A stretch of 64,000 bases of DNA, taken from positions 1,798,001-1,862,000 of the forward strand of contig OZ251233.1 of the NCBI GenBank assembly GCA_965240325.2, read 5' to 3'. The DNA comes from Rebecca billardiae RCC1528 (Eukaryota > Protista > Haptophyta). The notes beneath the pieces were generated by a model, which searched no databases, had not been told where the DNA came from, and was given only the letters and a program-made list of their open reading frames with translations. The translations under genes were made by a program, and so were the position numbers. Shown here piece after piece: positions 5,063-41,369 of this stretch (positions are counted from its first letter, which is position 1; each line of letters starts with the position of its first letter).

Positions 5063-6045
5063 TGCGCACCACGCGCTGACGGTGTGTGTAGTGTTGGGCG
5101 GTCTCGCTCACGGCGGCGCCGATGACGGTCGCTGGCGGGCCTTCCAGCTGGGCCCGCTGGGAGTGGAAGTCCCGCTACCGAGTTTAATATTTATAAGTTA
5201 TACTATACTAAGAATAAATAAGAGACGCACACAGCTCACGGGCAGGCGAGTTACTACTGTATTTATTCCATCAGGGAGCAGAATCCGCCTGTGCCAATTT
5301 CAGACTGCCAAATAAATGTCGTAGTGATCTAGCCGGTAGTGCGATTCTGCGGTGCAAATAGCGAGATCACCTTGGAGATCGTGTATCTCCCCTACTAATG
5401 TTGCAGAGATCGCGTCGACTAATTAGTGATTGAGGTCGTATATAGGCTCCAGTATGGGGGTATGTGACATTTTTTCGCAAAAGTTACTATCTTACTTATC
5501 AGCGTGACCCCAGGTCGTCGTCATATATATCATTTCAGGCGAATATTGACATCCCGAAGTTTGAGAGCCTCATGCCCTCGTCTCAAGAGACAAGACGACA
5601 GACAGTTGGATTTTGGGCCACTACACACCCCACTACAGTCCTTGGGGCTCTGACCCCCGTCTACGTCGTACCGATAGCTTACCGCGCCGGGGGCGGGTTG
5701 CCATCCGATCCGATGAGGTTCAGGTTGACAGAGACTTAGATTGAGTCGTCATCATCATGTACTGTCGGATGCCGGCGCTGTACTCTACGCCGCTGCGTCG
5801 AGTGAGACAGCACAGCTTGACTGCGTGAGTCAGTGCTGTGCATGTGCTATGAGCCGTCGCTGCGTCGTCGACGACTCGATGACTCGTCATCGCATCAGGT
5901 AATATATCGTAGTGCATAGGCATCAGCAGCCGCGCAGACGCTGAAGTCCGCGGCTGATCGACAACGGTCTAGTGCGCGCGTTTTGATGTGTCATGTGATG
6001 ACGGCGACGATCCATATAGTAACCGTGCGTCACAATGATTATTTA

Positions 6046-8388
6046 CCAGGTCGTTCCCCCTGCACTGGGAATCCGCGGTTTGGACATACGAGAAAAACAG
6101 CCGCAGGACGCACCCGTCGCTACCCGCGAATAAGATTTTCAGGTCTCGCGGGTGCGGATGTGCGTCAATCGATGAGCTGGTCTCGCAATCCCAAAATTGA
6201 GCCGCAACGAGATAGAAGGCAGGGCGGAGCCCCCGGTGGCGGCTCGGCAGGCGAGGGCCGACCAATCTTGACCTTTTGCCCTCGGCGGCAGGCGGGCAGT
6301 GGCAAGGCCGCCGAGCGCCGTTGGCGGGCGGCGCGCCCGGGGCACGCCGCACGGCGCTGCGGGCGCGGATGTGCTCGCGGAGCCGGCTTGCGTGGACAGG
6401 CTGTCGCGGGAGAGTATCTGGCGCCCTCCTGCGCCGCGCGTCTCGCGCCACGCCTCTTTTCGCCGCGGCTCAGGGCAGCGCGCACGCGCGCGCTGCCTCG
6501 AGGCCCGAGCACTGCCGCGCCGCAGCCAACCGCGCGCGCGCCGTGCGCGGCGTGGTCGGGAAGGAACGGGGGGTGCTGCCGGGCGAGATGACGACATCAT
6601 GTGCGCACGCCATGCCGCCCCGCGGCGCCGCGAAAGGGCACGATAACGGATCCGCACAGCTGTTGACGAGTGCTGATTTCTTGTCGTGCCTGAAGCCAGA
6701 CCTGAGCTCGAAGAAGATGATGAAAGTGCATCCGCGCGAGGAAAGCGTCGCACCCAGCACTTCTACATGACCACGCAGTGATGAACATTCATGTAAGAGT
6801 TTCCCGCGTGCCCGTCTGGCACTGTTCTGTGTCTCAATGATCGTCCCGACAAGGGTCACGACCGCGAGGCCGCGTGCACACCATTTGTGACAACTCGAAG
6901 AGGCGTGCAAACGGACCGGCGACACGCTCGGCAAGGCGTGGCGGGGCGGCATGGCGTGCGCACATGATGTCGCCATCTCGCCCGGCAGCCGCGCCCGTTC
7001 CTTCCCGACCACGCCGCGCACGGCGCGCGCGCGGTCGGCTGGCGGCGCAGGCAAGGCTGGCCTTGAGGCGGCGCGCGCGTGCGCGCTGCCCTGAGCCGAG
7101 GCGAAAGAGGCGTGGCGCAAGTCGAGCGGCGCAGGAGGGCGGCAGATACTCTCCCGCAACAGCCCGTCCACGCACGCCGGCTCCGCAAGCACATCCGCGC
7201 CCGCAGCGCCCTGGCCCGGGCGCGCCCCCCAGCCAGCGGTCACGACCGCGAGGCCGTGGCACACCTGACACCATTTGTGACAACTCGAAGAGGCGTGCAA
7301 ACGGACCGGCGACACGCTCGGCAAGGCGTGGCGCGGCGGCATGGCGTGCGCACATGATGTCGCCATCTCGCCCGGCAGCCGCGCCCGTTCCTTCCCGACC
7401 ACGCCGCGCACGGCGCGCGCGCGGTCGGCTGCGGCGCAGGCAGGCAAGGCTGGCCTTGAGGCGGCGCGCGCGTGCGCGCTGCCCTGAGCCGAGGTGAAAG
7501 CGGCGTGGCGCAAGTCGCGCGGCGCAGGAGGGCGGCAGATACTCTCCCGCAACAGCCCGTCCACGCACGCCGGCTCCGCAAGCACATCCGCGCCCGCAGC
7601 GCCCTGGCCCGGGCGCGCCCCCCAGCCAGCGGTCACGACCGCGAGGCCGTGGCACACCTGACACCATTTGTGACAACTCGAAGAGGCGTGCAAACGGACC
7701 GGCGACACGCTCGGCAAGGCGTGGCGCGGCGGCATGGCGTGCGCACATGATGTCGCCATCTCGCCCGGCAGCCGCGCCCGTTCCTTCCCGACCACGCCGC
7801 GCACGGCGCGCGCCGCGGTCGGCTGCGGCGCAGGCAAGGCTGGCCTTGAGGCGGCGCGCGCGTGTGCGCTGCCCTGAGCCGAGGCGAAAGAGGCGTGGCG
7901 CAAGCCGCGCGGCGCAGGAGGGCGGCAGATACTCTCCCGCAACAGCCCGTCCACGCACGCCGGCTCCGCAAGCACATCCGCGCCCGCAGCGCCCTGGCCC
8001 GGGCGCGCCCCCCAGCGCCGGGCCAGCGGCATCGATCGCACTCGCCGCCGCCCGGCTGCAGGGGGCGGGTCAGAATCGGTGCTCCGCACCCGCGGGAGGG
8101 CTCCCGCCTCCGCTTGCACACGAAGAACTCATTTCCAGCGCGCATCGATTTCGTGAGCGGACTATCGCTGACGAGGCTGATTACTGCTTTCCACGGCTTT
8201 GCCGCGCTCGGGATTTGGCTTCTCCAATGGATGGATGTAGTTTCGTCATTTTCAATTGGAAAGCTCGATTAGATCGTTCAAGTGGTCTGATAGAGCAAGC
8301 GGAAGACTAAATCTGCGTTGCTATGCAGCGGCCTCGCGCTCTGAATAGTGCGAAACCGCGGATTCCCAGTGCACGGGGAACGACCTGG
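6046..8388. mobile_element. Non-autonomous Tc1/mariner-like TIR element with foldback interior
   Basis: 36-bp TIRs CCAGGTCGTTCCCC(C/G)TGCACTGGGAATCCGCGGTTT at 6046-6081 and 8353-8388 (1 mismatch), each flanked by TA. No transposase recognised. Confidence 0.8.
6854..8016. repeat. Three tandem ~385-393 bp units, with an inverted diverged copy at ~6325-6625 and a partial copy at ~18925-19008
   Basis: Unit start GGTCACGACCGCGAGGCCG recurs at 6854, 7238 and 7631; ORF-track translations repeat accordingly. Confidence 0.95.
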
Positions 8389-8620: not shown

Positions 8621-9503
8621 TCACGCCGCGGCAGCATTGCCCGCTGCCGCGCGCGCAGCGCCGAGAATATGGGCGCAGATCTCGTCCACACCCTTACCAT
8701 GCTTCACCGCGGCGAAGACCGTCGGCCCATCGCCACGCATTCGCGCCGAGTCTCGCTCCATCACGCCCAGGTCGGCCCCGACCGCCTCTGCCAGATCCAC
8801 CTTGTTCACAATGAGAAGGTCAGACTGCGTAATGCCCGGACCGCCCTTGCGCGGCACCTGGGCGCGTGGGCGCGGGGCGTGGGCGCACGTGAGTACGTGC
8901 CGCGGGCGTGGGGCACGCCCGGCGTTCGAGCCTCGCATATCACACCTTGTCGCCGCCGCTCACGTCAACCACGTAGATCGTGAAGTCCGCGAGCTCTCGT
9001 GAGAAGTTGGCCGCAAGGTTGTCGCCGCCCGACTCGCAGATGAGGAGCTCAGGAGGCGGCGAGCACTCGCGCATGAGGCCCTCAAGAGCGGCAAGGTTGG
9101 AGGAGATATCCTCGCGGATCGCCGCGTGCGGGCATCCGCCCGTCTCGACGGCGCGGATGCGCTCCCCGCTGAGGGCGTCGTTGCGGCCCAGGAACTCGGC
9201 ATCCTCGCGCGTGAAGATGTCGTTCGTGACGACGCCGAGCGAGACCTCGTCGCGCAGCCGCTGGCAGAGCTGGAGCACCAGCGCCGTCTTCCCAGAGCCC
9301 ACCGGCCCGCCGATGCCCACGGTGAAGGCGCGCGTGCGGAAGTTGCGCAGCTGCCACTCCGGCCGCTCGCGCGCGGCAAAGTCGCCAGGGCCGTGCGCGT
9401 GGTCGTGTGTGTGGGTCATGTGGGTTCGCACGTGCACGAGTGGTGCGCCAAGCGCGCGCTGCGCGGTCCGGCCGACTCCCAGCGAGCGGAGTGCGAGGGA
9501 CAT
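8621..9503 (-). CDS. ureG: Urease accessory GTPase UreG; exons 9503-8946 and 8857-8621 (264 aa)
   Basis: His-rich N-terminus, P-loop [32 protein letters not shown]|[12 protein letters not shown]; 88-nt GT-AG intron. Confidence 0.96.
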
Positions 9504-9845
9504 CGCGCTGTCGGCGGGCGGCCGGCTCGCGTGTTCGCGGCCCGAATGCGAACGCGTGGCGGTGGTCTCGATCAGCTGACAGAACGTGAACGGGAACCGC
9601 TGCGCGCGGGGTGTCCGCGAAATCGTATCTACGATATCGCTTCCGGCCCCAGATTCAGACTCGCATTTATGATAGCCGTAGTAGCAATCAGTCTGGGCAG
9701 CTACTACTACCGTACCGTACTCATACGAGCAAGATGTTTGGTTCTGCTGCCATATTCAAGGCTCCGGCTGGACGGACAGATCGCCGAGCTTGGCCTCGGT
9801 CAGCCCGACACTCGCCGAGGCCGGCGCATTTGCGAGCGCCCGACG
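9504..9845. promoter_or_regulatory. Putative bidirectional promoter shared by ureG and urease
   Basis: 342 bp between divergent ATGs, more AT-rich than the flanks. Contains the dyad ATCGTA-TC-TACGAT (9622-9635) and is conserved in the second copy. Confidence 0.6.
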
Positions 9846-12642
9846 ATGCTCGGCGGCCTGGCCTCGCGTGCGGCGGGCCTGTTGGCCCGCGCCGCGCACG
9901 CGCGCTCGATGCACCTGTCGCCGCGCGAGCTCGACCACCTGCGACTCTCGCAGGTGGGCCAGCTCGCTCAGCGCCGCCTCGCGCGCGGCGTTCGTCTCAA
10001 CCACCCGGAGGCTGTGGCGCTCATCTCCTCGCAGATGATGGAGGCGATCCGCGAGGGCTCGCCCGTGTCCACGCTGATGACGCTCGGGCAGCGTATCCTC
10101 GGCCGCCGGCAGGTGATGCCTGGCGTCGCGTCCCTCATCCACGAAGTGCAGGTGGGCGCGCCGCGCGCGCGCTCTTGAAGACCCTTCTGCGCGTGCGCGC
10201 GCGCGCGCGCGCGAGGCGGGTGGCTCGCGCGCGCACTGTGAGACGAGCGCGCGCGCGCGGCGGCCTCGGGGCGCAGGTGGAGGCCACGTTTCCCGACGGC
10301 ACCAAGCTGCTCACCGTGCACAACCCGATCGCCCAGGAGGACGGCGACCTCGAGGAGGCGCTGCGCGGCTCATTCCTGCCGGTGCCTCCGCTCAGCGCGT
10401 TCGGGGGCGCCGCCGCCGACACGGTCGTGCCGGGCTCGTACGCGCACGCCGAGGGCGAGATCGAGCTGAACGCGGGGCGCTCGCTCATCGAGCTCGGCGT
10501 GACGAACACCGGCGACCGCCCGATCCAGGTCGGCTCGCACTACCACTTCCTCGAGACGAACAAGGCGCTCGTCTTTGACCGCGCGCAGGCGCTCGGCCGC
10601 CGGCTCAACGTGCCCGCGGGCTCGAGCGTGCGCTTCGAGCCGGGCGAGTCGAAGACGGTGACGCTGGTCGAGATCGCGGGCGGCAAGCGCGTCGTCTCGG
10701 GCAACCGGCTCACCGACGGCGTCGCCAGCCCCGACCGGCTGCCGGAGGTGATGGCGCGCGTGCAGGCGGGTGGGTTTGGGCACAAGGAGGCGGCGGCCGT
10801 GCCGGGCAAGCCGCTCAAGCTGAGCCACTCGCAGTACGCGGACATCTTCGGGCCGACGGTGGGCGACTGCGTGCGGCTGGGCGACACGGGGCTGCTCGCG
10901 CGCGTCGAGAAGGACGCCACCGTGTACGGCGACGAGTGCAAGTTCGGCGGCGGCAAGGTGCTGCGCGAGGGCATGGGGCAGGCGACGGGCGTGGGCGCCG
11001 CGGACGCGCTCGACGTCGTCATCACCAACGCGCTCATCATCGACGCGGTGCAGGGCATCGTCAAGGCGGACATCGGCATCAAGGTGCGCGCGCGCGGCGC
11101 GCCCGTGCGCCGCCCCCGCGCGCGCCAGCCGCCGACGCTCCCGACCCTCGGCCCGTCCGCCGCGCGCGCGCGCGCGCGCGCCCCATCCCGCAGGGCAACC
11201 GCATCGTGGGCATCGGCAAGGCGGGCAACCCAGACGTGATGGCGGGCGTGACGCCGGGGATGGTGACGGGCCTGACCACCGAGGCGATCGCGGGCGAGAA
11301 GATGATCGTGACGGCGGGCGGCATCGACACGCACGTGCACTGGATCTGCCCGCAGCTGATCGACGAGGCCCTCGCCTCCGGCCTCACCACCATGTACGGC
11401 GGCGGCACCGGGCCGGCGACGGGCACGAACGCGACCACGTGCACGCCCGCGCCGTCGCAGGTGCAGATGATGCTGCAGGCCACCGACGTGTTCCCGATGA
11501 ACTTTGGGTTCTCCGGCAAGGGCAACTCGTCCGCGGTGGACGGGATGTTCGAGGTGATCGAGGCGGGCGCCGCCGGCCTCAAGCTGCACGAGGACTGGGG
11601 CACGACGCCCTCGGTGATTGACACCGCGCTCGGCTTTGCGGACGAGCACGACGTCGCGATCACCATCCACACCGACACGCTCAACGAGTCCGGCTTCGTC
11701 GACGACTCGATCGCGGCGATGAAGGGGCGCACGATCCACACGTACCACTCGGAGGGCGCGGGCGGCGGCCACGCGCCCGACATCATCAAGGTGTGCGGCC
11801 TGCCGCACGTGCTGCCCTCCTCGACCAACCCGACGCGGCCGTTCACGGTCAACACGATCGACGAGCACCTCGACATGCTGATGGTGTGCCACCACCTGGA
11901 CAAGAACATCCCGGAGGACGTCGCCTTCGCCGAGTCGCGCATTCGCGGCGAGACGATCGCGGCGGAGGACATCCTGCACGACACCGGCGCCATCTCGATC
12001 ATCTCGTCCGACTCGCAGGCGATGGGGCGCGTGGGCGAGGTGGTGGCGCGCACGTGGCAGACGGCGCACAAGATGAAGGAGCAGCGCGGCGCACTGCCCG
12101 AGGACACGTCGAGCGGCGACGACAACACGCGCATCAAGCGGTACGTGGCCAAGTACACGATCAACCCCGCGCTCGCGCACGGCATGGCGCACGCCGTCGG
12201 CTCGGTCGAGGTGGGCAAGCTGGCCGACCTCGTCCTGTGGAAGCCGGCGCTCTTCGGGGCCAAGCCCGAGATCGTCATGAAGGGCGGAACGATCGCGTGG
12301 GCGCAGATGGGCGATCCCAACGCGTCCATCCCGACGCCGCAGCCCGTGGTGATGCGGCCGATGTTCGGCGCGTTCGGCTCGGAGGCGATCGGTGGCACGT
12401 CGCTCGCCTTCGTGTCGCAGGCGGCGGCGCGCGCGGGCGTGGGCTCGAGGTACGGCCTCAAGAAGGGCGTGGAGGCGGTGAAGCGCTGCCGCGCGGTCAG
12501 CAAGGCGGACATGGTGCACAACAGCCACTGCCCCGACATCAGGGTCGACCCGGAGACGTTCGAGGTGACCGCGGACGGCGAGCGCCTCACGTGCGAGCCC
12601 GCAAAGGTGCTGCCGCTCGCGCAGAAGTTCTTCCTCTTCTGA
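9846..12642 (+). CDS. URE: Single-chain eukaryotic urease (gamma-beta-alpha fusion); exons 9846-10151, 10277-11083, 11194-12642 (853 aa)
   Basis: [70 protein letters not shown] flap, SDSQAMGR; two GT-AG introns. Confidence 0.98.
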
Positions 12643-13455
12643 GCGTGAGCGTAGTGATGCTACGCCTCATCCTTCGGAGCCCGGCCGCACTCGCAGGGGG
12701 CACGGCGGACATACAGTACTCATCGTGATCTGGGCGGTGCGTTCGAGGGGGCGCTGGAGTAGAGCGCAGCTTCATTCACACTACTCGCTACGGCGCGGTC
12801 TGAACGTGAAGGCAGTGGGCCGTGCGGTCTGTGCAACGGCCGTGCGCGAGGTGGCACATGCCGCGCGTGCGCCCGCTCGGCGCGCTTGAGGCTGAGCAGT
12901 CGTGAATCGCGCGAGCAGACCGAGCACTCTGCAGTGGCAGCGGTCAGCCGTCAGGCTGCGTCACCATTCATCTGGCATTCACCAACTCATCACCACGCGG
13001 AGGACATCCAAAAATGAAGTCCCAATAAGCAAGAGACGACACGACTCACGAGCAGCAGCAGCGGCAACATTCTGGCGATCAACCGCGTACGACTACTGCC
13101 TCAGCGCCCTACTCAGCCTGTCCCGGACCCGAGACCGTGATTACCGGAACGTCAACGACAACGTGCGGAGTGTCCCGGACCCGTGTCCGATGAGCCTAGG
13201 TCTGAGTCATCTCAGTCTGCGCAGTCCGCCGCCACTACCGTTGATGAAGCAGATATGCCATATCACGCGCGCGCTTAAGAACGATATGATATATACACCA
13301 TTTGAAAAGTATAGTGTCCCGTACACGTGGCAGCGTGTATACAGTACGTACGTCCCCGCGTGTCCCGAGAACGAGCCCGCGTGGCGCGTCACGCGTCGCC
13401 GGGCAGCTTCGGCGAGTCGCCCGCACTCCGCAGAGTCCGCCGCATTCAAGTCGAG

Positions 13456-18810: not shown

Positions 18811-20525
18811 TATGGCGTGGGCAAGGGAGGTCCGGGCCGGGAGCTCCCAGCGAGCGGCCAGCGCGACATCACTCCGAAGTTTTCCCTGAGCGCCGGGCGG
18901 CAGCGGCGGCGAGGGCGGTGCTCCGCTGGCGGGGCGCGCACGGGGCACGGCGCAGCGGGCGCGGATGTGCCCGCAGAGCCGGCGCGTGCGGACGGGCTGT
19001 TGCGGGAGAGAGAGAAAGTGACGGATCGTGTGAATGTGAAGTGTGAACTCGCGACGATGCGATTCGCGCGAATGTGAGTACGCAAAGCGCCGAACGACGA
19101 GCGGCTTTTGACCGAACGACGAGCGGCTTTTGTCCTATCGAGCGCGTAAGTGGGTACGCGAATTGCGCTTATGTGACCGACCGACAAACAGACGGGTGAG
19201 CCGGGCGTCAAATAAAGGGGTGCGACGGGCTGGTCCCCAGCGTGAAGTCGTGCCTTTGTTCTCGTGGGTTTCCAGAATATAAACAGCGGGGGCCTTGCGG
19301 CCTTGTCCCGGTGGGGCTGGTCGAACACAGCGCGTGTAGGACGCGACGGAGAAGCTTCCCAGGGCCGGCAGACCCGACGACGATGGGACGAGTTGGCCGT
19401 TCAGCGCTGACTGACGGTATCATCCGGTGGCGCGCCGCAGTCGCGCGTGCGATTAAGCCACTGGGCGCGGCAGCGCGGCACTTCTGCAAGGCCCACCGAG
19501 GCGCATGGCGAGGCGCGCGTCGATGCGGTCGTCGCTGCGCACGGCCGCTCGGGCACGACGGCACGGCAACGGCACGCACCGCGGATGGCCCACCGGCTGT
19601 AGGCGCGGGGCGAGCGGCGCCAGGCCGGCAGGGCACAACCGACTGCAGGGCGTAGACCGTCCTGCTAAGCCGTCGCTGAGCACGGCCCGTCGGGCACGAC
19701 GTGGTACGAGCGGCTCGCGTCGGTGTGCATGTTGTGTTGTGCAGCTACGCCGGTCCGCGATGGCGCCGCGAGCCGCGGGCGGCGCGGGTGACGGCTCGAA
19801 GGCCGCACCTGTTGATGACGAGCCAGGGCGAGTAGTAGTAGTCGGGCAAGTCGGCGAGCGGGTGGCTTATGGTAGGCTTGTGGTACGAGCTTCTCCATGA
19901 GGCCGTTCGTGCACGTCATCTGATGCGGTCGCGGCTGCTTGATCGCCGCCACGTGCCGCTGGATCTCCGCCAGATCGGCGCAGTTCCTCGCGACGCCGAC
20001 GTGATGGCATCCAGCGCTGGGTTCGGCGGAGCGGCCCGCAGAGCTGTTCCTCGGTCGCGCACGTGTGTACTGTGTGCGAGTCGAGCCACGCCGGCTGAGC
20101 GCCATTCTGCGTGTCGCGCGCGGCCTTCGCCTCCTGGAGCGGCGCGCTCGTTCGTCATACTCAATCGTGTGTGCCGAGCGCACGCGGCGCGGCGGCGAAA
20201 GCACACGTGCGTCGCGGTTCCTCGACTTGGGGAGCGGGACCAAGGACCCCAGTTTCTCCCGGGTAACAATTCCTCTAACTATTACTCACCCCCGTCGCGC
20301 CCGTGAAAAGTGTTACAGGCCGAGCGTAGCAGTAACATGTAACACTCTCACGCCGGACTCACCCGGACTGCGGGTGTCTGACCGAGCCACGCCGCCTGAC
20401 TAAACCCTGGCTGAGCACACTGTCAGCCATCACTTTCACTTGAGACCGTCCGGGTCTCGGATTCTCGCGGCCCGTTGCCGGCCAGTCCGGGTCCGGGTCC
20501 GGGGCCGGGCGGGTGGCGCTGGGCC

Positions 20526-20956
20526 CCGGGAGGAGGCCCCCTGTAACAGCTGTAACACCGTAACACGTAACAAGTCCGGCGCGGCGAGTCCGGGAGCCGA
20601 CCGGTCCAGGTCCGGGGCGGGCGGGCCGCCAGGCCCGGGCCCGGGAGGAGGCCCCCTGTTACAGCTGTAACACCGTAACACGTAACACAATGGCGCCGCT
20701 CGGCCATGGCCCGTCGTCGGCCCGGTGAAAAAATGGCGGCGGGGCGCGCGGCGCGCAGCGTCGCGCTCGGTGCGCTCGGCGGGGCTCGAGGAACGACTGC
20801 GGACGGGCGAGCGCGCACGGGCGCGAGCACGAGTCGCGTCGCCCGCGCCCCTCCCCGAGCGACCTGCCGCCGCGTCTCGCGACGATGGCGCAGTGGCCGC
20901 TCGTCCGTGGCCGCGTGAAAAAATGGCGGCGGGGCGCGCGGCGCGCAGCGTCGCGC
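20526..20956. repeat. Left inverted-repeat arm of the primase cassette, including two inverted TGTTAC-array units
   Basis: Near-perfect reverse complement of 22439-22878. Confidence 0.95.
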
Positions 20957-22176
20957 GCCCAGGCGAGGCGTGCACGCACGAGGTTGTGTTCCTGGCAAGT
21001 GGCTCGCAGCGTACGTTCGGCGGCCGGCTGCACGTGCCGAGCAGCCGCCTGCGCGAGCTCGATGCACTCGTGGCCGCGCAGCACTTGGTGCACGGCGCGC
21101 GCGCGCCCATGGTAGTCGAGGCGCTCGGCGCGCGCGCGCGCTTCGTCGTCGATGTGGACTGCGCCTTCAGCACCGCGCCCTCCCCCTCGGACGTGGCCGC
21201 ACTGCTCGTCGGCCTCCACCGCGTCGCGGAGGAGCATCTGCCCGTGCCCGTTCCCGTGGCTGGGCGCGTCGTGTACGTCTCGGCGCGCGCGCCCAGCCCC
21301 GCGACCGCCGCCGGCTCGGCGCCGGGCGTGCGCCGAGCCGGGATTCACGCGACATGGAGCGACTCGGCCATCGTCTCGGCCGCTGAGGCGGCGCGCATCG
21401 CGCGCGTCCTGCACGACTGGGCGCGCTCGCAGCCGCGGCCGCCGTGCTGGCACAAGCTCGAGATCGACTGCAGCATCTACGGGGCGGGCCTGCGCCTGCC
21501 GTTCACGGCCAAGTCGGACGGCGGCCCGCCCTACCTGCCGGCAGCCGTCGTCGCCGCCGACGAGCACGGCGCCGTGCGCTGCGCGTGGCTCGACGCGCTG
21601 CCTGCGCAGCACGCGCTGCGGCGGCTCGCGGCGGATGGCGCGCGCTGGCTCTCTCGCGCGCGGCTGCGCACCGAGCTGGTCGAGTGGAGCGCGCCGCCGC
21701 CCGCGCCCGGCCGACCGGCTGTGCCGGCGACGAGCGCCGCCGGTCGCGATGCGGCGGCCGGCGCGCGGCGCGCGGCGCTGGTCGGCTGGCTCAACGAGCA
21801 GCTGCACGCGCACGCACGAGTCTCTGGCTCGGCCGAGCGCTGGCCGCGCATCGTGCAGGTGTTTGCTGGGAGCACGGCGCACGGCCCGGTCGCGACGTGC
21901 TCGACCGCCAGCAGGTGGTGCGAGTGCAAGGGCGCCGAGCACGCGCGACGCACCGTCTTCTACTTCGCCAAGTCCGACGGCCTCGACCTGTGCTGCGCCG
22001 ACGAGGCGTGCGTGGCAGCGCGCGGCGCCGGGCGCGCGCGCGCCGTCTGCCTGCGCAGCATGCTCTTCTGCGCGGGCGGCGGCCGCGCGGGCGCGCCGCC
22101 ACGCAGCGCCGAGTTTGCCTCGCGCTTCCACGCCGCGTTCGCCAGCGGCCGTGCCGCGATGGGCCCGGCGCGTTGA
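20923..22176 (+). CDS. NCLDV/herpesvirus-clade AEP primase-polymerase (PrimPol-like) with UL52-type Zn finger, 417 aa, intronless
   Basis: GGRLHVP, MVVE, motif I RFVVDVD, motif II GIHATW, motif III IDCSIY, LRLPFTAK; C-terminal C-x6-H-x17-C-x4-C (WCECKGAEH...CADEAC). ATG in AAAAAATGGCG context. Confidence 0.82.
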   Translation: MAAGRAARSVARPGEACTHEVVFLASGSQRTFGGRLHVPSSRLRELDALVAAQHLVHGARAPMVVEALGARARFVVDVDCAFSTAPSPSDVAALLVGLHRVAEEHLPVPVPVAGRVVYVSARAPSPATAAGSAPGVRRAGIHATWSDSAIVSAAEAARIARVLHDWARSQPRPPCWHKLEIDCSIYGAGLRLPFTAKSDGGPPYLPAAVVAADEHGAVRCAWLDALPAQHALRRLAADGARWLSRARLRTELVEWSAPPPAPGRPAVPATSAAGRDAAAGARRAALVGWLNEQLHAHARVSGSAERWPRIVQVFAGSTAHGPVATCSTASRWCECKGAEHARRTVFYFAKSDGLDLCCADEACVAARGAGRARAVCLRSMLFCAGGGRAGAPPRSAEFASRFHAAFASGRAAMGPAR

Positions 22177-22211
22177 CGACGCGGCGGCCGTGCAGCGCGC
22201 ATGCGCCCGCA

Positions 22212-22264
22212 CGCCGCCGCCGTCGCCGCCGCCGCCGCCCCGCCGCCGCCGCCGCCGCCGCCGC
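22212..22264. repeat. (CCG)n microsatellite
   Basis: Seen directly, just downstream of the primase stop codon. Confidence 0.9.
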
Positions 22265-22438
22265 GCCCACCTCGCGCCGTCGGCCGACGGGCTCAGCAAA
22301 CGAGGCGGCGTGCAAACAAGGACTCGGCGCTCGCGCCGGGGTCGGTGCAGCGCGACGCCACGCGAACCGCCGCGGTGCTCGCGCCCGTGCGCGCTCGCCC
22401 GTCCGCGTGCGCTCCTCGAGCCCCGCCGAGCGCACCGA

Positions 22439-22878
22439 GCGCGACGCTGCGCGCCGCGCGCCCCGCCGCCATTTTTTCACGCGGCCACGGACGAGCGGCC
22501 ACTGCGCCATCGTCGCGAGACGCGGCGGCAGGTCGCTCGGGGAGGGGCGCGGGCGACGCGACTCGTGCTCGCGCCCGTGCGCGCTCGCCCGTCCGCGGGC
22601 GTTCCTCGAGCCCCGCCGAGCGCACCGAGCGCGACGCTGCGCGCCGCGCGCCCCGCCGCCATTTTTTCACCGGGCCGACGACGGGCCATGGCCGAGCGGC
22701 GCCATTGTGTTACGTGTTACGGTGTTACAGCTGTAACAGGGGGCCTCCTCCCGGGCCCGGGCCTGGCGGCCCGCCCGCCCCGGACCTGGACCGGTCGGCT
22801 CCCGGACTCGCCGCGCCGGACTTGTTTGAGTTGTTACGTGTTACGGTGTTACAGCTGTTACAGGGGGCCTCCTCCCGG
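22439..22878. repeat. Right inverted-repeat arm of the primase cassette
   Basis: Reverse complement of 20526-20956 with one ~9-nt insertion. A ~105-bp block is duplicated at 22376-22480 and 22565-22670. Confidence 0.95.
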
Positions 22879-24205
22879 GCCCGGCGGCCCGCCCGCCCCG
22901 GCCCCGGACCGGCCGGCTCCCGGACTCGCCGCGCCGGACCGTGTTACGTGTTACGGTGTTACAGCTGTAACACTAACAGGGCCAGGGGGCCTCCTCCCGG
23001 GCCCGGCGGCCCGCCCGCCCCGGACCTGGACCGGTCGGCTCCCGGACTCGCCGCGCCGGACTTGTTACGTGTTACGGTGTTATTACAGCTGTTACAGGGG
23101 GCCTGTCCTCCCGGGCCCGCGGGCGGCCCGCCCGCCCCGGCCCCGGACCGGCCGGCTCCCGGACTCGCCGCGCCGGACTTGTTAGTGACGACATTGTTAC
23201 GTGTTACGGTGTTACAGCTGTTATACTTACACGGGGGGCCGCTCCTCCCGCGGGCCCGCGGCGCGGCCGGCCCGCCGGCAGCCCCGGACTCGGACGAGCC
23301 GGACTTGTTACGTGTTACGGCGTTGTTACAGCTGTTACAGGGGGCCTCCTCCGCCGGGCCGCGAGGCCCGGGCCCGCCGGCAGCCCCGGACCCGGACGCG
23401 CCGGACTCTTGTTACGTGTTACGGTGTTATTACAGCTGTTACATTTATTTAACACGGGGCCTCCTCCCGGGCCCGGCGCGGCCGGCCCGCCGGCAGCCCC
23501 GGACTCCGGGACGAGCCGGACTTGTTACGTGTTACGGTGTTACTTACAGCTGTTACAGGGGGCGGCCTCTAACCTCCCGGGCCGCGAGGCCCGGGCCCGC
23601 CGGCAGCCCCGGACCCGGACGCGCCGGACTTGTTACGTGTTACGGTGTTACAGCTGTTAATTATAAAGTGACAGGGGGCCTCCTCCCGGGCCCGGCGCGG
23701 CCGGCCCGCCGGCAGCCCCGGACTCCGGGACGAGCCGGACTTGTTACGTGTTACGGTGTTACAGCTGTTACAGGGGGCCTCCTCCCGGGCCGCGAGGCCC
23801 GGGCCCGCCGGCAGCCCCGGACCCGGACGCGCCGGACTTGTTACGTGTTACGGTGTTACAGCTGTTACAGGGGGCCTCCTCCCGGGCCCGGCGCGGCCGG
23901 CCCGCCGGCAGCCCCGGACTCCGGGACGAGCCGGACTTGTTACGTGTTACGGTGTTACAGCTGTTACAGGGGGCCTCCTCCCGGGCCGCGAGGCCCGGGC
24001 CCGCCGGCAGCCCCGGACCCGGACGCGCCGGACTTGTTACGTGTTACGGTGTTACAGCTGTTACAGGGGGCCTCCTCCCGGGCCCGGCGCGGCCGGCCCG
24101 CCGGCAGCCCCGGACTCCGGGACGAGCCGGACTTGTTACGTGTTACGGTGTTACAGCTGTTACAGGGGGCCTCCTCCCGGGCCGCGAGGCCCGGGCCCGC
24201 CGGCC
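22707..24205 (+). repeat. Tandem array of 14 units (97-132 bp) with core GTTACGTGTTACGGTGTTACAGCTGTTACAGGGGGCCTCCTCCCGGG
   Basis: Cores start at about 22709, 22833, 22943, 23064, 23196, 23307, 23411, 23524, 23632, 23743, 23840, 23939, 24036 and 24135; linkers alternate between types. Confidence 0.97.
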
Positions 24206-24727
24206 CAGGAGTGCCGCCGCGGACCGACCGCGCCGCTGACTTAGGACGCCGACGGCGTCACGGCGGCGATGCGGCGCGCCGCCGCGCGGCCGCCGCCGCG
24301 CGCGCGCGCCTGACGCGCGCGCTGTCGAGCCGCAGTCCCTCGCGTGCCTGCGCGGGCGGGTGACCGGGGTGTTACCATCGCTACGGCCGACAGGGCCAAA
24401 AATCCCTATAGAAAACATTTCCCCTATGAAGGTAATATGGGTAGCAGAAACTCGGGTCCATACCCGGGAGCGGATGGTCGTAGAAAAGCGTCAACAAATA
24501 GGTGGGAATCGCAACGACATCCCTATGGCGCGCGCTCAAAAAGGTAACGACATGCGTTCTCGATCCCCGAGGCGTGCCTAATCAAAAAACGTTTGCGGCC
24601 CCATTGTTCGTATTCCTACTCCGGTATTACTTGGGACAGCAGTACGTCACACCAATTAAAGGGGGTCGGAGCTGGGTAATCCCAGGGCTTTGTCACGAAT
24701 TAAAATTGTTTAAAGCTGTGTTCACCA

Positions 24728-24772
<45 letters not shown>

Positions 24773-24776
<4 letters not shown>

Positions 24777-25009
24777 CGACGTGGTATGCAACGGGCAGGC
24801 GTCCGAAGAGTCAGCAAGCTGTAGCGGCAGATCGAGCAGCAGAGACAAACACCAGGATCAGCGCTCCTCGCCGTCGTCCCCCCCCCCTCGTAGTCGCCCA
24901 TCACTTCATCGCCGAGCGGAAGCTCGACGCACCGTCTGGCGTCGACGCGCGCGCGCCACCGCGGTGGTCGCGGTGCCACGCGTCGTCAGCCGTCGTCTCG
25001 AAGCAGTCG
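24773..25009 (+). mobile_element. (TA)n-embedded dispersed repeat, subfamily A
   Basis: Terminus TTAACGACGTGGTATGCAAC; homologous to 41370-41610; TA runs on both sides. Confidence 0.75.
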
Positions 25010-25021
25010 TATATATATATA

Positions 25022-25239
25022 TAGAATGGGTATGAGTAGATAACGGTACGTCGGTACCCTTGTTGTACCCACTAGCATACCCACTCTGGCTGTACCAGCA
25101 ACTCTAATCAAGCAGCTACTGTAAAGTACCCCTGCGCGATCTCCGTCCCATCAGGAGCAATAATCACTTGCTATTGGCGCCCTCAAATTTGCTCAAATGA
25201 AGGTAGTGGTTGATGAACACAGATGAGGTTTCCGAAGCT
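25022..25239. repeat. 218-bp direct repeat, copy 1
   Basis: Near-identical to 26492-26710. Confidence 0.95.
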
Positions 25240-25283
25240 TCGTGTCGACGATCGGGCACTGCCGCCAATCATATATATATATA

Positions 25284-26492
25284 TTCTGGTGAACACAGCT
25301 TTAAACAATTTTAATTCGTGAGAAAGCCCTGGGAGACCCAGCTCCGACCCCCTTTAATTGTGTGTCCAATACTGCTGAGGAAAGTAATACCGGAGTAGGA
25401 ATACGAACAATGGGGCCTCAAACGTTTTTTGATTAGGCACGCCTCGGGAATCGAGAACGCACTTGGTTAATTTTTGCGCCAATTAAGGCACGGCCTCGGG
25501 AATCGATAACGCATGTGGTTAATTTTTGCGCGCGCCGCATAGAGATGTCGTTGCGATTCCCACAAATCTGGCGGCGATCTTAGCGGTACCCCTGTTACCC
25601 AGTTCATACCGCCTATACAATACGGTGACGGTACGCAAAGCGCCTGCCGCTTTTGCCGACGACGCCGGGTCCCCGGTAGGGAGGGGCACGCGTGCAGATG
25701 CGGAGGCGGAGCGCGGCGGCGTGCGCGCAATTCGCCAACGTGCGTGCAGCCCTGGCCATTCTCATCCGCCGCCGGTACCGCGGCGAGGGCGACGCGGGCG
25801 GCGCGCGCATGTCGGACGCGCTGTCCACTGAACACGTCGCGCGCTGGGACGCGCGCGTCGCCGGGCTGCGCGCGCTGGAACTGCGCGATGAGCCGTTTGT
25901 GGACCTGGCGCGCCTCGCCGTGCACCCGCACGAGGCCACGCGCCCCGGCGCGCGCGCGTCCGCGGCCTCGCACCCAAACTGCGAGACGCCGGCAGCGCTC
26001 GACGCGTGCCTCGCGCAGCTGCGCGCGCGGCTGGCGAGCACGCTGAACGACGTGGACGAGGCGCGCAACGCGGAGCGCCGCGCGGGTCACGCCGCGCGTC
26101 GAGCCGCCCCGCGCGCGGCGCGCGACGGCTGCAGGAGTCTACGCCGTACAGTCGGTTGTGCCCTGCGCCGCTCGCTCCGCACCTGCAGACCGGTGGGCCA
26201 TCCGCGGTGCGTGCCGTTGCCGCGCCGTCGTGCCCTAGGGCCGTGCGCAGCGACGACTGCATCGACGCGCGCCTCGCCGTGCGCCTCGGTGGGCCTTGCA
26301 GAAGTGCCGCGCTGCCGCGCCGCTGGCTTAATCGCACGCGCGACTGCGGCGCGCCACCGGATGATACCGTTAGTCAGCGCTGAACGGCCAACTCGTCCCA
26401 TCGTCAGACCCTAACCAGCTTCTCCGTCGCGTCCTAGACGCGCTGTGTTCGACCAGCCCCACCGGGACAAGGCCGCTAGGCCCCCGCTGTTT
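25284..26492 (-). mobile_element. Short relative (copy R) of element L, inverted, with different internal sequence
   Basis: Shares head and tail blocks with 19281-24730. Has a ~50-bp subterminal tandem duplication at 25436-25533 and an internal ORF-like stretch from ~25692. Confidence 0.65.
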
Positions 26493-26710
26493 AGAATGGG
26501 TATGAGTAGATAACGGTTCGTCGGTACCCTTGTTTGTACCCACTAGCATACCCACTCTGGCTGTACCAGCAACTCTAATCAAGCAGCTACTGTAAAGTAC
26601 CCCTGCGCGATCTCCGTCCCATCAGGAGCAATAATCACTTGCTATTGGCGCCCTCAAATTTGCTCAAATGAAGGTAGTGGTTGATGAACACAGATGAGGT
26701 TTCCGAAGCT
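26492..26710. repeat. 218-bp direct repeat, copy 2
   Basis: Near-identical to 25022-25239. Confidence 0.95.
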
Positions 26711-31559: not shown

Positions 31560-31863
31560 CGTGCCGCGAGCGACAGCCGGGCTCACTCGTCACTGTTGCT
31601 CCGCCGGACTGCGTCGATCTTACCGGCGGCGCGGACTACTGACATTCTCATCCAAGTGCTCCGGAAGGCGCTCGGCCGCGGCGGCATCTGCCGTCGCCGC
31701 CGCGTGCCCCAGGCCGAGGCGGTGCTCCATCCCGGCCCTGCTCCCTCAGAGGGACAGGGCTGCGGGTGGCGCATTGCCTGACCTGGTTGGAAGGCGCGGA
31801 CGCATTCTATGTGTCTGCTGCACTCTGAGCCTGACGCTTGCCCGTTGCATACCACGTCGTTAA
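31560..31863 (-). mobile_element. Microsatellite-anchored dispersed repeat, subfamily B
   Basis: Reverse complement of the 40130 and 40634 copies; terminus abuts (CA)n. Inner boundary is approximate. Confidence 0.7.
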
Positions 31864-35512: not shown

Positions 35513-36274
35513 TCACCACGCGCGCGGCTGCATCGCCATCACCCAGTATGCGTGCTCACAATCGCCAGTCTGGCTGTCGATCCACATGATGCCTTCGCGC
35601 ATAAGGGCAGCGAGTGCGTCGTCTGCGCGCCCAGGGGTCCAGCTGAGCTGGTCGACGAGCTGTGCGCGTGTGACAAAAGCGGTGGGAAGCGCGACCTCCA
35701 GAACGGCGTTGTGGTCGCGGCTGAGTTCGGTTGGGACTGAGTGCACGTACTCTGCGCCACCAAGCTGCACGAGGTTGTACCCGCCTCCCAGCTGTCGCAG
35801 CTGCCCGAGAGCGCAACGCACGTCGTCGGCGCTCACTACCTGCGTGCTGCTCGAGTGCGGAGAGCCTCGCGCCGACGCTGCGCGGACGGCCTCGAGCCGT
35901 CGGTGAAGGTCGCTGAGGGCCATGAGCCCGCCATTGTCAGCACGCGTCCTCATGCACACGTCCGCAGCCTGGACGGCGAGCTCAAAGTAGAAGTCGCCGA
36001 CGCCAAGCAGCTGCGCCCAGAACCCCTTGCTGGACTGCAGCGGATCCACCCCGATTGTCGAGCACATGCTATTGAACTGCGCACGGAATTTGGGATCCCT
36101 GTTGATGTCCTCGCGATGCTGCGTCGCAAACAGCTCTATCTTTTCACGAAGTGTCTCGAGCTGCTCGCGGAGCTCAGCGGCATTCTGAGTGCTGAGGTCC
36201 TCGCCCGCGCGCCGGAGATGCGCATCCTTGCGCTGCTGCTTCTGTAGACCAGCGATGCCCACGCCCCGTCGCAT
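35513..36274 (-). CDS. SNF8: ESCRT-II subunit SNF8/Vps22/EAP30
   Basis: MRRGVGIAG, FRAQFNSMCSTIGVDPL, FWAQLLGVGDFYFELAVQ, SVPTELSRDH, EGIMWIDSQ. Confidence 0.95.
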   Translation of the reverse strand: MRRGVGIAGLQKQQRKDAHLRRAGEDLSTQNAAELREQLETLREKIELFATQHREDINRDPKFRAQFNSMCSTIGVDPLQSSKGFWAQLLGVGDFYFELAVQAADVCMRTRADNGGLMALSDLHRRLEAVRAASARGSPHSSSTQVVSADDVRCALGQLRQLGGGYNLVQLGGAEYVHSVPTELSRDHNAVLEVALPTAFVTRAQLVDQLSWTPGRADDALAALMREGIMWIDSQTGDCEHAYWVMAMQPRAW

Positions 36275-36401
36275 GCCCGGCGGGAGCGACGGGGATCACC
36301 ACTTTCGCAGTTTGCGCACGCAAGTCAGTGGCGGGCCCGGGCGGCCATCGTGGGAATGTAATCTCGCCTGCCCGAGCTGTGTGCGTCTCTTATTCTTTAT
36401 A

Positions 36402-37039: not shown

Positions 37040-37865
37040 TAGTAAACTGTGCACCCAAGCCACGGCTGGCGGCCGGAGGAGGGCAGGAGTCCGGGAGCCA
37101 AGGCGCTGGGTGCGTACCAAGCTTGAGGCAGTGGTGGTGTGAGCACGTTGACGGTTGGTCGCCAGGGTTGATGTCAAGTTGTAGTTGTCGTCGTCGACGG
37201 CGCCGTCCGGCCTGGCAGGAAGTAGGACTAGGAGTACCTAAAGGGCAAGGCAAAGACTGCGGTTCACGAGCATGTTGACCGCACGGCGTGGTGCCAGCAG
37301 TGTGCCGGTCGCTGTGGCAACGTGAATTGAGTTGGCCGGGTCCGAGGAAATGTCAGCTTCCGACGGCGCTACCATCGGCGACGGCTTCATGGGCGCGGTG
37401 ACAGTTGGCGGGCGTCAATCTCGCCTGCCTGAGCTGCGTGTGCGTCTCTTATTCTTACTGATGTAGTCGTATAAACTGTTACTGTCACGCCTGCCACGCC
37501 AAGTCGACGGTGGCCGGTAGCCGGCTAACATTAAATCAGTTAGACAGCCCAGCTGAACAGCGAGTCCGCCTGCGAGGCGCGAGCCCGACCGAGGCGGCGA
37601 GTCCGTGTCCGTGAGCGATCGCGGCGTGACCGTGGGCGTGGTCGGCACCAGGTGCATATGATGAGGCCTGACGTCCCGTCCGGACTCAGGTGTCTGGGGT
37701 CGCCTGCTCACACGCCGGGAGACGCCTCGTCGGGCGATCGACGGGATCTGCGCCGCGGCATCCACATCCCCGCGAAGGCCTACTCATTGCAACCAGACGC
37801 CGTGCGCGCACGGTCGAAGCCTTGGCAGGAAGCGCAGCGCGCGCGCGGCCACCCATTCGGAGTAG

Positions 37866-39992: not shown

Positions 39993-40129
39993 TGATATAA
40001 ATAGCTCGCGACGCGATTATTACTATATATATATAGGTTATCTAATTTACACTGATGGAAAATTTTATAGAATCAGCATAAAACATTGATGTGACACCGC
40101 TATATATTAATATATATATATATATATAT

Positions 40130-40544
40130 TTAACGACGTGGTATGCAACCGGCAAGCGTCAGGCTCAGAGTGCAGCAGACTACACATAGAATGCGTCCGC
40201 GCCTTCCAACCAGGTCAGGCAGTGCGCCACCCGCAGCCCTGCCCCCCTATGGGAGCGGGGCCGGCCGATGGAGCACTCTGCACTGCCTCGGCCTGGGGCA
40301 CGCGGCGGCGACTGCAGATGCCGCCGCTGCCGAGCGCCTTCCGGAGCACTTGGATGAGGGTGAGGTCGTAGTCGATGTCGCCGCCCGCCGACCTAGCGGC
40401 GAGCAGCTCCGGCAAGCGGCAGCCGCGGCTGTCGCCCCCGTGCGCCCGCGTGGGCGCCTGGATGAGGATGAGGTCGTAGTACGCGTCGCCGCGCGCCGGC
40501 CAAGCGGCGCGCAGCTGCAGAAGAGGGGCTTGGAGAGTGAGCGC
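40130..40544 (+). mobile_element. (TA)n-embedded repeat, subfamily B
   Basis: Shared terminus; TA runs on both sides; close match to 40634-41052. Confidence 0.8.
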
Positions 40545-40561
40545 AAATATATATATTATAG

Positions 40562-40622
<61 letters not shown>

Positions 40623-40633
40623 TAAGTATATAT

Positions 40634-41052
40634 TTAACGACGTGGTATGCAACCGCGACAAGCGTCAGGCTCAGAGTGCAGCAGACGCATAGAATGCGTC
40701 CGCGCCTTCCGACCAGGTCAGGCAGTGCGCCACCCGCAGCCCTGCCCCCCTACGGGAGCGGGGCCGGGATGGAGCACCGCCTCGGCCTGGGGCACGCGGC
40801 GGCGACGGCAGATGCCGCCGCTGCCGAGCGCCTTCCGGAGCACTTGGATGAGGGTGAGGTCGTAGTCGATGTCGCCGCCCGCCGACCTAGCGGCGGGCAG
40901 CTGGCCGGCAAGCGGCAGCCGCGGCTGTCGCCGCCCCGTGCGCCCGCGTGGGCGCCTGGATGAGGATGAGGTCGCAGTACGCGTCGCCGCGCGCCGGCCA
41001 AGCGGCGCGCAGCTGCAGAAGAGGGGCTTGGAGAGCGAGCGCGCCGCCTAGC
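40634..41052 (+). mobile_element. (TA)n-embedded repeat, subfamily B (tandem second copy)
   Basis: Shared terminus; TA runs on both sides; close match to 40130-40544. Confidence 0.8.
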
Positions 41053-41369
41053 ATATATATATATAGTATATCATCATTGATATGACAGTTAATACGACAT
41101 AATTAAATAATAACATTAATAATCCGATGAACACTCAACAGCGTCAACACTCACACACACACGGCACATTCACACGGGCGACACGGCGCCTAGTCTGCCG
41201 CCTAGACATGCTACAGCACACATGCGCTACACATTCAACTCACATGCACACACACACATCACACACACACACACACACACCATGCGCAATTTGAAATATT
41301 ATATTGGCGAATACTGCTTGGCGCACGTGCGCTTTGGGGGCACGCGCCCGCGGGGGCGCTGCGCACGAC

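Follow-up and report, generated by a model that had tools for sequence, protein, structure and literature searches.

A giant-virus-type primase gene with mirror-oriented iteron arrays in a haptophyte alga of the order Pavlovales

Endogenous giant-virus genes in algae are known, as are primases of viral type, and the UL52-type zinc finger is common to herpesvirus primases, giant-virus primases and human PrimPol. Giant-virus primases resembling C962R or A468R carry DxD, GxH and D-x-S/T-x-Y motifs, followed by a C-x6-H...C-x4-C finger. ASFV C962R (AsfvPrimPol) and HSV UL52 likewise have an AEP fold and, set apart from it at the C terminus, a zinc finger; they are large, C962R being fused to a helicase and UL52 belonging to a helicase complex, whereas neither a helicase domain nor a nearby helicase gene was found at the locus described here. 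Endogenous giant-virus elements and integrated polinton-like viruses resemble this locus in having a viral replication gene in an algal nuclear genome and decayed family copies, but they carry many viral genes (capsid, packaging ATPase, polymerase, integrase) where we find one. By analogy, the locus may also be likened to iteron-type replicons and to giant-virus satellites such as transpovirons, in that one replication gene is accompanied by direct-repeat arrays in a small unit, with inverted arrays at both ends and iterons specific to each copy. The initiators of iteron plasmids are not AEPs of the NCLDV-herpesvirus clade, and transpovirons, at ~7 kb, have several genes including a helicase. 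Within the literature searched and to our knowledge, no primase-only unit with its own mirror-image, copy-specific short-repeat arrays has been described, and we know of almost no viruses of Pavlovales. Cellular members of the same higher-order clade, PrimPol (CCDC111) and the kinetoplastid PRI1/PRI2, are thought to be viral in origin and have an AEP domain and a UL52-like finger that is needed for priming (PMC4538821, PMC4027207).

The locus lies in a 64-kb stretch of nuclear DNA from a Pavlovales haptophyte, the whole of which is referred to as the window (Table 1). Its central ORF is uninterrupted across 417 codons. In the encoded protein the catalytic motifs occur in order (D77-x-D79, G140-x-H142, D182-x-S184-x-Y186), the finger residues are C333-x6-H340...C358-x4-C363, and an N-terminal GG-R-L-H-V-P occupies residues 32-38, so that every motif named in the original prediction (DxD, GxH, D-x-S-x-Y, the finger and GG-x-L-x-VP) could be located and the protein is complete for catalytic and zinc-finger residues. 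The GC3 of the ORF is 0.91, which is coding-like and equal to that of host genes, indicating that the copy has been resident for a long time or is fully adapted.

Table 1. Features of the primase locus and its surroundings, in window positions.
Feature	Position	Strand	Remarks
Outer inverted repeat, left arm	19280..19676		88% to 26122-26493; neighbour, doubtful member of the module
Left array	20479..20690	-	2 units plus a partial third; mirror-oriented relative to right array
Left arm of inverted repeat	20569..20956		388 nt, 2 mismatches to right arm; gapped start 20479
Stand-alone NCLDV-type AEP primase-polymerase ORF, intact, 417 aa	20923..22176	+	GC3 0.91
AEP domain	~residues 18-210 (20974-21552)	+	Part of ORF 20923-22176
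Putative UL52-type finger C-x6-H...C-x4-C	residues 333-363 (21919-22011)	+	Part of ORF 20923-22176
Unique spacer, stop codon to right arm	22177..22438		(CCG)n run 22207-22264
Right arm of inverted repeat	22439..22826		Gapped extension to 22931
Right array	22700..24232	+	14 units, 97-132 bp
Outer inverted repeat, right arm	26122..26493		Neighbour, doubtful member of the module

Searched directly, the window protein gave no significant match in Pfam, including PF23162 (AEP_C962R) and PF03121 (Herpes_UL52); the sole match, to DUF7739, fell under the cut-off, and sequence and profile searches of the PDB returned nothing. A library of 1.84 billion proteins yielded six related cluster representatives, none named PrimPol. 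Two of them, P0006 and P0004, linked to the window protein at E values of 5e-10 and 6e-5, match PF23162 at 43.2 bits (6e-11) and 27.8 bits (3e-6), respectively, against a cut-off of 23 bits. P0006 alone also matches the PF03121 finger, weakly (E 0.096), and its 14.4-kb metagenomic contig carries genes for an mRNA capping enzyme, a NUDIX protein and TFIIS, a viral link. Alignment with P0001 gave 37% identity across 365 residues, with the conserved blocks falling on the AEP motifs. D77, D79, H142 and D182 are kept in all five full-length family members, and C333, H340 and C358 in all seven family sequences (C363 in six of the seven).

Structure prediction, proposed as a check, gave a poor model (pLDDT 56) in which the finger region was modelled best. 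With this model, the first BFVD matches in Foldseek were C962R-like AEPs of medusavirus, Feldmannia virus and pandoravirus (E 6e-8 to 1e-4), proteins of 325-480 aa and thus similar in size to the window protein. The best PDB matches were the Prim/Pol domain of AsfvPrimPol and HSV UL52, at E ~1e-3, with identities of 13-17%, low TM-scores and a model of low confidence. Compared with giant-virus C962R-like primases, then, the window protein shares motifs, size and fold matches, but it is too diverged for the Pfam model, which it reaches only via its relatives, and it is encoded in an algal chromosome rather than a virus genome. The data support the conclusion that the product of the ORF is genuine and conserved, belongs to the NCLDV-herpesvirus AEP clade and carries a finger of probable UL52 type. 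The original prediction, which placed an intronless 417-aa ORF of this clade between inverted repeats, holds for the reading frame, the arms and the clade alike. In the reading favoured below, the protein falls on the giant-virus (C962R-like or phycodnavirus A468R-like) branch of the clade, the A468R-like label being a lead for comparison and not a membership.

Eukaryotes have co-opted members of this clade before (PMC4538821), and the AEP could accordingly be a domesticated gene that serves the alga in DNA replication or damage tolerance, as PrimPol and kinetoplastid PRI1/PRI2 do, its repeats being regulatory or incidental. The intact ORF, the host-like GC3 and the host genes on all sides would fit. 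PrimPol, however, is widespread and single-copy, whereas the whole library contributed six representatives to the window family, not one of them drawn from an annotated Pavlovales proteome, and the family is mostly decayed: its other loci are one intact copy (L001), two that are 5'-truncated and three that are frameshifted. The sequencing run that gave one of these paralogues (L013) also yields contigs 100% identical to the window, which makes it a second copy in the same organism. No PrimPol chain appeared among the PDB sequence, profile or fold matches. We therefore consider domestication quite unlikely. A very small family of patchy distribution, the decay of most of its copies and the lack of PrimPol in every search result support the view, already put forward, that the window protein does not behave as an orthologous host PrimPol.

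The genes around the ORF are of host type (urease, UreG, SNF8/EAP30, bestrophin, carboxylesterase, an LRR-kinase, PCNA) or lack recognizable domains. ORFs up to 5 kb away yielded no domain of a capsid protein, integrase, helicase or transposase, and the viral hallmark cluster (major capsid protein, packaging ATPase, polymerase, integrase) is absent among the neighbours. The viral-type gene content of the locus is the primase gene alone, which bears out the earlier view that this is not a large viral insert. Gene order near SNF8/EAP30 has nothing in common with that in Diacronema lutheri or Pavlovales sp. CCMP2436, and synteny is therefore uninformative at such species distance.

The ORF lies between two inverted arms that, when aligned with gaps (20479-20956 and 22439-22931), are 95% identical across 494 columns (~480-490 nt); given also the 388-nt core, their earlier description as ~430 bp and near-perfect is fair. 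Within the left arm lie one array unit, 1.3 tandem copies of a 190-bp segment (20707-20956), the motif CGTGAAAAAATGGCGG at 20724-20739 and again at 20914-20929, and the opening 11 codons of the ORF. Since its inner end sits 34 nt within the ORF, the start codon and these codons belong to the inverted repeat. The arms would also carry the probable promoter of the gene. On the minus strand of the right arm the same A-run motif and start codon recur (22466-22481, 22656-22671), opening only a short ORF. The 190-bp repeat is carried on past the right arm (22375-22438), and its copy number differs between the two sides. Neither arm nor array sequences occur elsewhere in the window.

Long, nearly identical inverted arms that bear arrays and enclose one gene, with no transposase domain nearby, are also what a non-autonomous cut-and-paste DNA transposon would present, if an element with long terminal inverted repeats and subterminal arrays had captured a primase gene and were moved in trans by a transposase encoded elsewhere. 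This is very unlikely. The arm takes in the start codon and 11 codons of the gene; the arrays differ greatly in unit number (2 versus 14) and extend past the arms; and iterons vary between copies, which would not be expected of one transposase family. Furthermore, reading of 20440-20530 and 24180-24260, where the arrays give way gradually to G/C-rich sequence on their outer sides, revealed neither a target-site duplication nor defined termini. An inverted duplication that took in array, upstream region and the first 11 codons describes the arms better than the term transposon termini does.

A still less probable explanation is that misassembly of a repeat produced the inverted repeat, gave the array its length, or did both. 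Short-read contigs of the relatives do end exactly at such arrays, and the window has a second near-perfect inverted duplication, of very large size. Nevertheless, the arms differ by two mismatches, with indels in the gapped extension, the 190-bp repeat is unequal in copy number and array units have individual variants, all of which are typical of real copies.

The arrays were originally read as repeats of TGTTAC; the unit is in fact 97-132 bp long and holds four (T)GTTAC motifs, spaced by 7, 8 and 9 nt. When up to two mismatches are allowed, a 20-mer covering three GTTAC motifs has 15 matches in the window, all of them within 20552-24154; shuffled sequence leads one to expect none. Together with a right-hand unit at 23306, the fourteenth, which bears a variant of the 20-mer, these matches reproduce the earlier counts: on the left two units and part of a third, on the right 14. 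Across 16 units the first ~50 nt (iteron cluster and G/C-rich box) are nearly invariant and the remainder is variable; the outer five units of the right array form a 196-bp higher-order repeat, alternate units being ~99% identical. The single-strand structure of the array units was unremarkable (z about 0), and they have no AT-rich stretch that clearly suggests unwinding.

What ties the arrays to the gene is that diverged copies repeat the unit layout beside the gene with different iterons. Three such copies, on short contigs, one of them from the same organism as the window, have this layout adjoining the gene in matching orientation. An iteron cluster followed by AAGTCCGG or a close variant lies upstream of P0004 (L005), upstream of P0002/P0127 (L006, L015) and, in mirror orientation, downstream of P0003/P0128 (L013, L016), and the iteron sequence is different at each. 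In the window, all 12 occurrences of the AAGTCCGG 8-mer fall inside the arrays, and among the relatives' loci it is confined to two iteron-bearing flanks; non-CG iteron clusters are absent from the remaining 60 kb of the window. The contigs of the relatives show one unit or its start, with both arms in no relative. Flanking arrays were not seen beside the homologue on a giant-virus contig (L004), nor in the 58 nt upstream and 400 nt downstream available at L001. As in iteron replicons, a replication gene adjoins short direct-repeat arrays, and the pairing extends across copies. On the sequences compared, what is new here is this pairing in three diverged copies whose iterons differ. The element enclosed by its repeats that was first proposed is supported in part: the diverged copies strengthen the link between gene and arrays; element ends and a target-site duplication could not be defined.

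The same observations bear on the alternative of an inert endogenous viral fragment, in which the algal genome took up a primase gene from a giant virus and the gene lies by chance in a local tandem repeat that became duplicated in inverted orientation, the arrays having no functional relation to it. The host-like codon composition, the decay of most relatives, the nest of other repeats in the neighbourhood and the lack of an array at L001 all favour this. Against it, the ORF is intact with complete catalytic residues, conservation within the unit is selective for its iteron half, and unit layout and orientation recur beside three diverged copies with different iterons, which is not expected of a chance satellite. 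We regard an inert fragment as somewhat unlikely.

We favour, with a probability of about one half, the interpretation that the locus is a virus-derived module of ~3.7 kb in the Pavlovales nuclear genome, in which a giant-virus-type primase gene and mirror iteron arrays form one unit, either what remains of a small self-priming replicon or giant-virus satellite or a copy of one that is still competent. Gene and arrays would be inherited together, and the arrays would act as cis-acting sites for the primase or its partners, perhaps origin-like priming or loading sites recognized through the UL52-type finger, which primase activity requires in this clade. The inverted arms would have arisen by inverted duplication of the array, the upstream region and the 5' end of the gene. 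The locus would then be an endogenous viral primase variant and possibly a small element of a new kind. Points that weigh against this interpretation are the lack of direct Pfam and PDB sequence matches, the poor structure model, the short contigs on which the flanks of the relatives were read, the array-free flanks of L001, the ordinary single-strand structure of the units, the lack of element ends and target-site duplication, and the host-like GC3. A bolder extension, which we consider distinctly doubtful, is that it represents an undescribed class of minimal eukaryotic selfish replicon, living or recently so, or a giant-virus satellite of Pavlovales, in which one AEP would recognize copy-specific iterons in inverted end arrays and prime its own duplication, protein and iterons co-diverging.

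If gene and arrays do work together, the module would be the smallest eukaryotic DNA element built on a primase-polymerase, and its diverged copies would provide natural pairs of protein and DNA site for asking how a UL52-type finger picks priming sites. If they do not, the locus nonetheless cleanly documents that Pavlovales were once in contact with giant viruses.

Repeats of other kinds crowd around the module. The outer inverted repeat encloses the whole of it together with other repeats, and the neighbourhood also has a palindromic repeat that includes an (AT)n run, as well as pieces that recur at 40-41.6 kb.

The locus carries an intact viral-type primase-polymerase gene in a host chromosomal setting with no other viral genes, and mirror-image iteron arrays are tied to this gene across diverged copies. 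As originally predicted, the 417-aa ORF is open throughout and lies between near-perfect inverted repeats, both of which continue outward as a tandem array with the predicted number of units on each side (see table). Because the reading frame is continuous, no spliced model arose. The G+C content at its three codon positions (0.77/0.64/0.91) is coding-like, in a window with a G+C content of 55–74%, and its product is a real protein. The left arm ends 34 nt within the ORF, so that the start codon and the first 11 codons belong to the repeat. Within the window, a 16-nt A-run motif overlapping the start codon is confined to the arms, at four positions, and the arms also contain a 190-bp segment with a tandem copy number of 1.3 on the left and ~1.65 on the right. 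An A-run-like motif also lies near the truncated copy of the gene on two short contigs, L006/L015 (positions 321–341 and 419–439 of L006), in the opposite orientation to that gene. In the right arm the mirrored start codon leads into no more than a short ORF; a second gene driven from this arm was rejected, since it would have only ~59 codons and no homologue.

Coordinates, within the window, of the primase module and of the other features discussed
Feature	Positions	Strand	Details
417-codon ORF	20923-22176	+	continuous reading frame
Inverted arms, ungapped	20569-20956 / 22439-22826		388 nt, 2 differing positions
Inverted arms, gapped	20479-20956 / 22439-22931		95% over 494 columns
Left array	20479-20690		2 units and a partial third
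Right array	22700-24232		14 units
A-run motif	20724-20739, 20914-20929, 22466-22481, 22656-22671		16 nt
Outer inverted repeat	19280-19676 / 26122-26493		88% over 398 columns; encloses module and other repeats
Palindromic repeat	24534-25479		arms ~210 nt at 90%, around an (AT)22 run
Direct repeat	25022-25239 / 26492-26710		219 nt, 99%
Recurring pieces of the 24534-25479 / 26492-26710 region	40101-41615		
Inverted repeat pair	31647-31840 / 40659-40852		194 nt, 95%, 8.8 kb apart
SNF8/EAP30 gene	35513-36274		
Dispersed motif	36350-36397, 37417-37457, 5205-5254, 61650-61678		~30-50 nt; first position just upstream of SNF8/EAP30, the other three elsewhere in the window
Urease inverted duplication	9017-12645 / 52241-55865		three blocks, 573-1483 nt, 99-100% identical; innermost blocks ~39.6 kb apart (12645 to 52241)
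Rfam '5_ureB_sRNA' matches	11211-11351, 53535-53675		within urease coding sequences
1235-aa ORF	56355-60062	+	GC3 0.97; strong A-over-T skew; 87-96-nt internal tandem repeats
Tandem repeat in 548-aa ORF	6878-8129	- (ORF)	~3 copies of ~390 bp, 94-99% identical
PCNA-like ORF	1670-2431	+	PCNA_N 3.6e-51; 18 kb from primase

The array units are 97–132 bp long. Each begins with four (T)GTTAC motifs, at spacings of 7, 8 and 9 nt, and then a G/C-rich box. These elements make up the first half, which is near-invariant in all 16 units (commonest-base share 0.95–1.00 per ten-column block), while the second half varies in both sequence and length (shares of 0.69–0.89). The outer five units of the right array form a 196-bp higher-order repeat, in which alternate units are ~99% identical. 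When a 20-mer across three of the motifs was searched for with up to two mismatches, 15 matches were found in the window, none of them outside the arrays, against an expectation of zero. Single-strand DNA folding of the units was no better than that of shuffled sequences; a hairpin priming signal is thus unsupported.

The window protein had no significant match in Pfam, PHROGs, PDB sequence or profile searches, and look-up of the exact 417-aa product gave no record, probably because short-read contigs break within the arms. Exhaustive HMMER searching of 1.84 billion representatives of all lengths recovered just six relatives (176–509 aa) and no longer fusion proteins. Word-indexed searches, with either the single sequence or the family alignment, yielded only two of these, P0001 and P0006, because the candidate lists were flooded by low-complexity words. 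Identity to P0001 is 37% over 365 residues, with the conserved blocks falling on the primase motifs. In the family alignment, the catalytic residues D77, D79, H142 and D182 are kept in all five full-length members, and zinc-finger residues C333, H340 and C358 in 7/7 (C363 in 6/7). Two relatives, P0006 (6e-11) and P0004 (3e-6), pass the Pfam model for the N-terminal AEP domain of C962R (PF23162), and P0006 has in addition a weak match to the Herpes_UL52 finger. An AlphaFold model built on the thin alignment was poor (pLDDT 56). Its best PDB matches were the Prim/Pol domain of the African swine fever virus (ASFV) primase and HSV UL52, and those in BFVD were C962R-like AEP proteins of medusavirus, Feldmannia virus and pandoravirus (E down to 6e-8), together with several unnamed viral proteins of 325–480 aa; despite the low quality of the model, these matches are consistent. 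The NCLDV-herpesvirus clade is defined by an AEP domain with a separate UL52-like finger, and its listed members include phycodnavirus A468R-like proteins and cellular PrimPol (PMC4538821). Taken with this definition, the PF23162 matches of the two relatives, the conserved motifs and the fold matches bear out the proposed placement in this clade. The narrower proposal of a phycodnavirus-type primase is no more than plausible, the best BFVD matches being without names.

The association of the gene with iterons extends to its relatives. Upstream of the P0004 gene and on its strand, contig L005 carries, in this order, a G/C box, a motif repeated four times at 9-nt spacing, TAATCCGGG and a G/C-rich segment, and its 111-nt periodicity indicates that the contig begins inside an array. 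Upstream of the gene in L006 and L015, a G/C box is followed by an 8-nt motif present three to five times and then by AAGTCCGG. Downstream of the gene in L013 and L016, in mirror orientation, CCGGACTT is followed by three copies of a 7-nt motif at spacings of 7 and 8 nt, and both contigs end at this cluster. The flanks of the relatives therefore match the left and right arrays of the window in layout and orientation, with an iteron that differs in each lineage. All 12 occurrences of the 8-mer AAGTCCGG/CCGGACTT in the window lie within the arrays; among contigs L001–L014 the 8-mer is confined to the flanks of L006 and L013, in each case on the strand expected, and it is likewise present in L015 and L016. 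Clusters of non-CG 5-mers (at least three copies at 7–9-nt spacing) occur exactly at the L005, L006/L015 and L013/L016 flanks, and none is found in the other 60 kb of the window. Since the 8-mer is confined to arrays and flanks and such clusters are absent elsewhere, a chance origin of the shared layout is unlikely. The iterons nearest to those of the window belong to L013, which encodes the closest protein, and the most different to L005, which encodes the most distant; across four lineages only, this hints that iteron and protein may have diverged together.

These flanks bear on the possibility that the gene is an inert viral fragment lodged in an unrelated repeat. The contigs concerned are 1.3–2.6 kb long, each with a single unit or the initial bases of a unit, and L001, the other intact copy, has no array within its short flanks; given the layout shared by the remaining lineages, we regard such a fragment as unlikely. 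Misassembly seems most improbable.

The family has few members, a patchy distribution and mostly decayed copies. P0006 is encoded on a 14.4-kb metagenome contig whose gene table lists an mRNA capping enzyme, NUDIX and TFIIS, a giant-virus-like gene set; the other relatives are on short G+C-rich contigs. L001 is intact, L005 and L014 each have at least one frameshift, L013/L016 are 5′-truncated with at least two frameshifts, and L006/L015 are 5′-truncated with the remaining part in a single frame. Around SNF8, the window is matched at 100% identity by contigs of runs ERR14847148 and ERR14847149. L013, from the latter run, has an AEP-like part with 69% DNA identity to the window gene, and the same organism thus holds at least a second, diverged copy. 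The window gene might be a domesticated host gene; nevertheless, few intact and many decayed copies have the look of endogenous viral or selfish DNA, not of a housekeeping gene, and we consider domestication distinctly unlikely. No further relatives were found in IMG/VR with the window protein, P0006 or the family alignment, nor in one GTDB genome scan. The array 20-mer was absent from IMG/VR, and its five single matches in JGI metagenomes, of only 20–25 nt and in unrelated contexts, were discarded as chance. G/C-rich noise dominated tblastx of the relatives' contigs against the window, and nothing relevant was found in the literature on primase-only elements or on Pavlovales endogenous viruses. 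A+T-rich sequence abuts the G+C-rich primase copies in L006 (1–125, 1371–1440), L014 (760–1282) and L015 (1–285), so that in these other organisms or samples they stand out as compositional islands; this may not be diagnostic, as the window too has short A+T-rich intergenic stretches.

The surroundings of the module are cellular. The SNF8/EAP30 protein shares 77% identity with an MMETSP transcript, 59% with Pavlovales sp. CCMP2436 and 58% with Diacronema lutheri, which assigns the window to a Pavlovales haptophyte and sets aside a human or animal source; none of the contigs looked human either. Other window genes, all ordinary cellular ones, encode a single-chain urease, UreG, bestrophin, a carboxylesterase, an LRR-kinase and PCNA. 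ORFs within ~5 kb of the module lack Pfam domains, and no capsid, integrase, helicase or transposase was found around it, in agreement with the original prediction that it is not part of a large viral insert. Gene order was uninformative, with no neighbours shared with D. lutheri or Pavlovales sp. CCMP2436. A non-autonomous transposon would account for inverted arms around a gene with no transposase nearby; neither module ends nor a target-site duplication could be defined, and we consider this very unlikely. Repeats are abundant close to the module. The outer inverted repeat was rejected as the element's ends, as its centre differs from that of the inner repeat, the spacers are unrelated and no clear flanking duplication was seen; it is treated as a separate repeat. 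The palindromic and (AT)22 repeats, pieces of which recur farther along the window, look like a dispersed host repeat family unrelated to the module, and no evidence was found that neighbouring repeats belong to it. A further inverted repeat pair is listed in the table.

The reading that we favour, with a probability of about 50%, is that gene and arrays form a module, which would be inherited as a single unit and derive from a virus or a satellite. The arrays would then be candidate cis-acting sites at which the protein, or a complex containing it, might be loaded and DNA synthesis primed. In this clade a separate zinc finger is needed for primase activity (PMC4027207, PMC4538821), and the finger is accordingly the natural candidate for iteron recognition. 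The arms would provide a predicted promoter as well as the start codon. The copy in the window might still be competent as an element, might have been domesticated or might be a relic.

Several other features of the window were recorded. The large inverted duplication contains the urease gene and borders on a UreG-like ORF; its right copy is one continuous 967-aa single-chain ORF, and the left is in two frames (one frameshift). The Rfam '5_ureB_sRNA' matches are probably the urease coding sequence itself. Short-read contigs break at the dispersed motif upstream of SNF8. The 1235-aa ORF has no Pfam domain and the minus-strand 548-aa ORF no clear domain. PCNA is also encoded by giant viruses; the PCNA-like ORF of the window is most likely a host gene.
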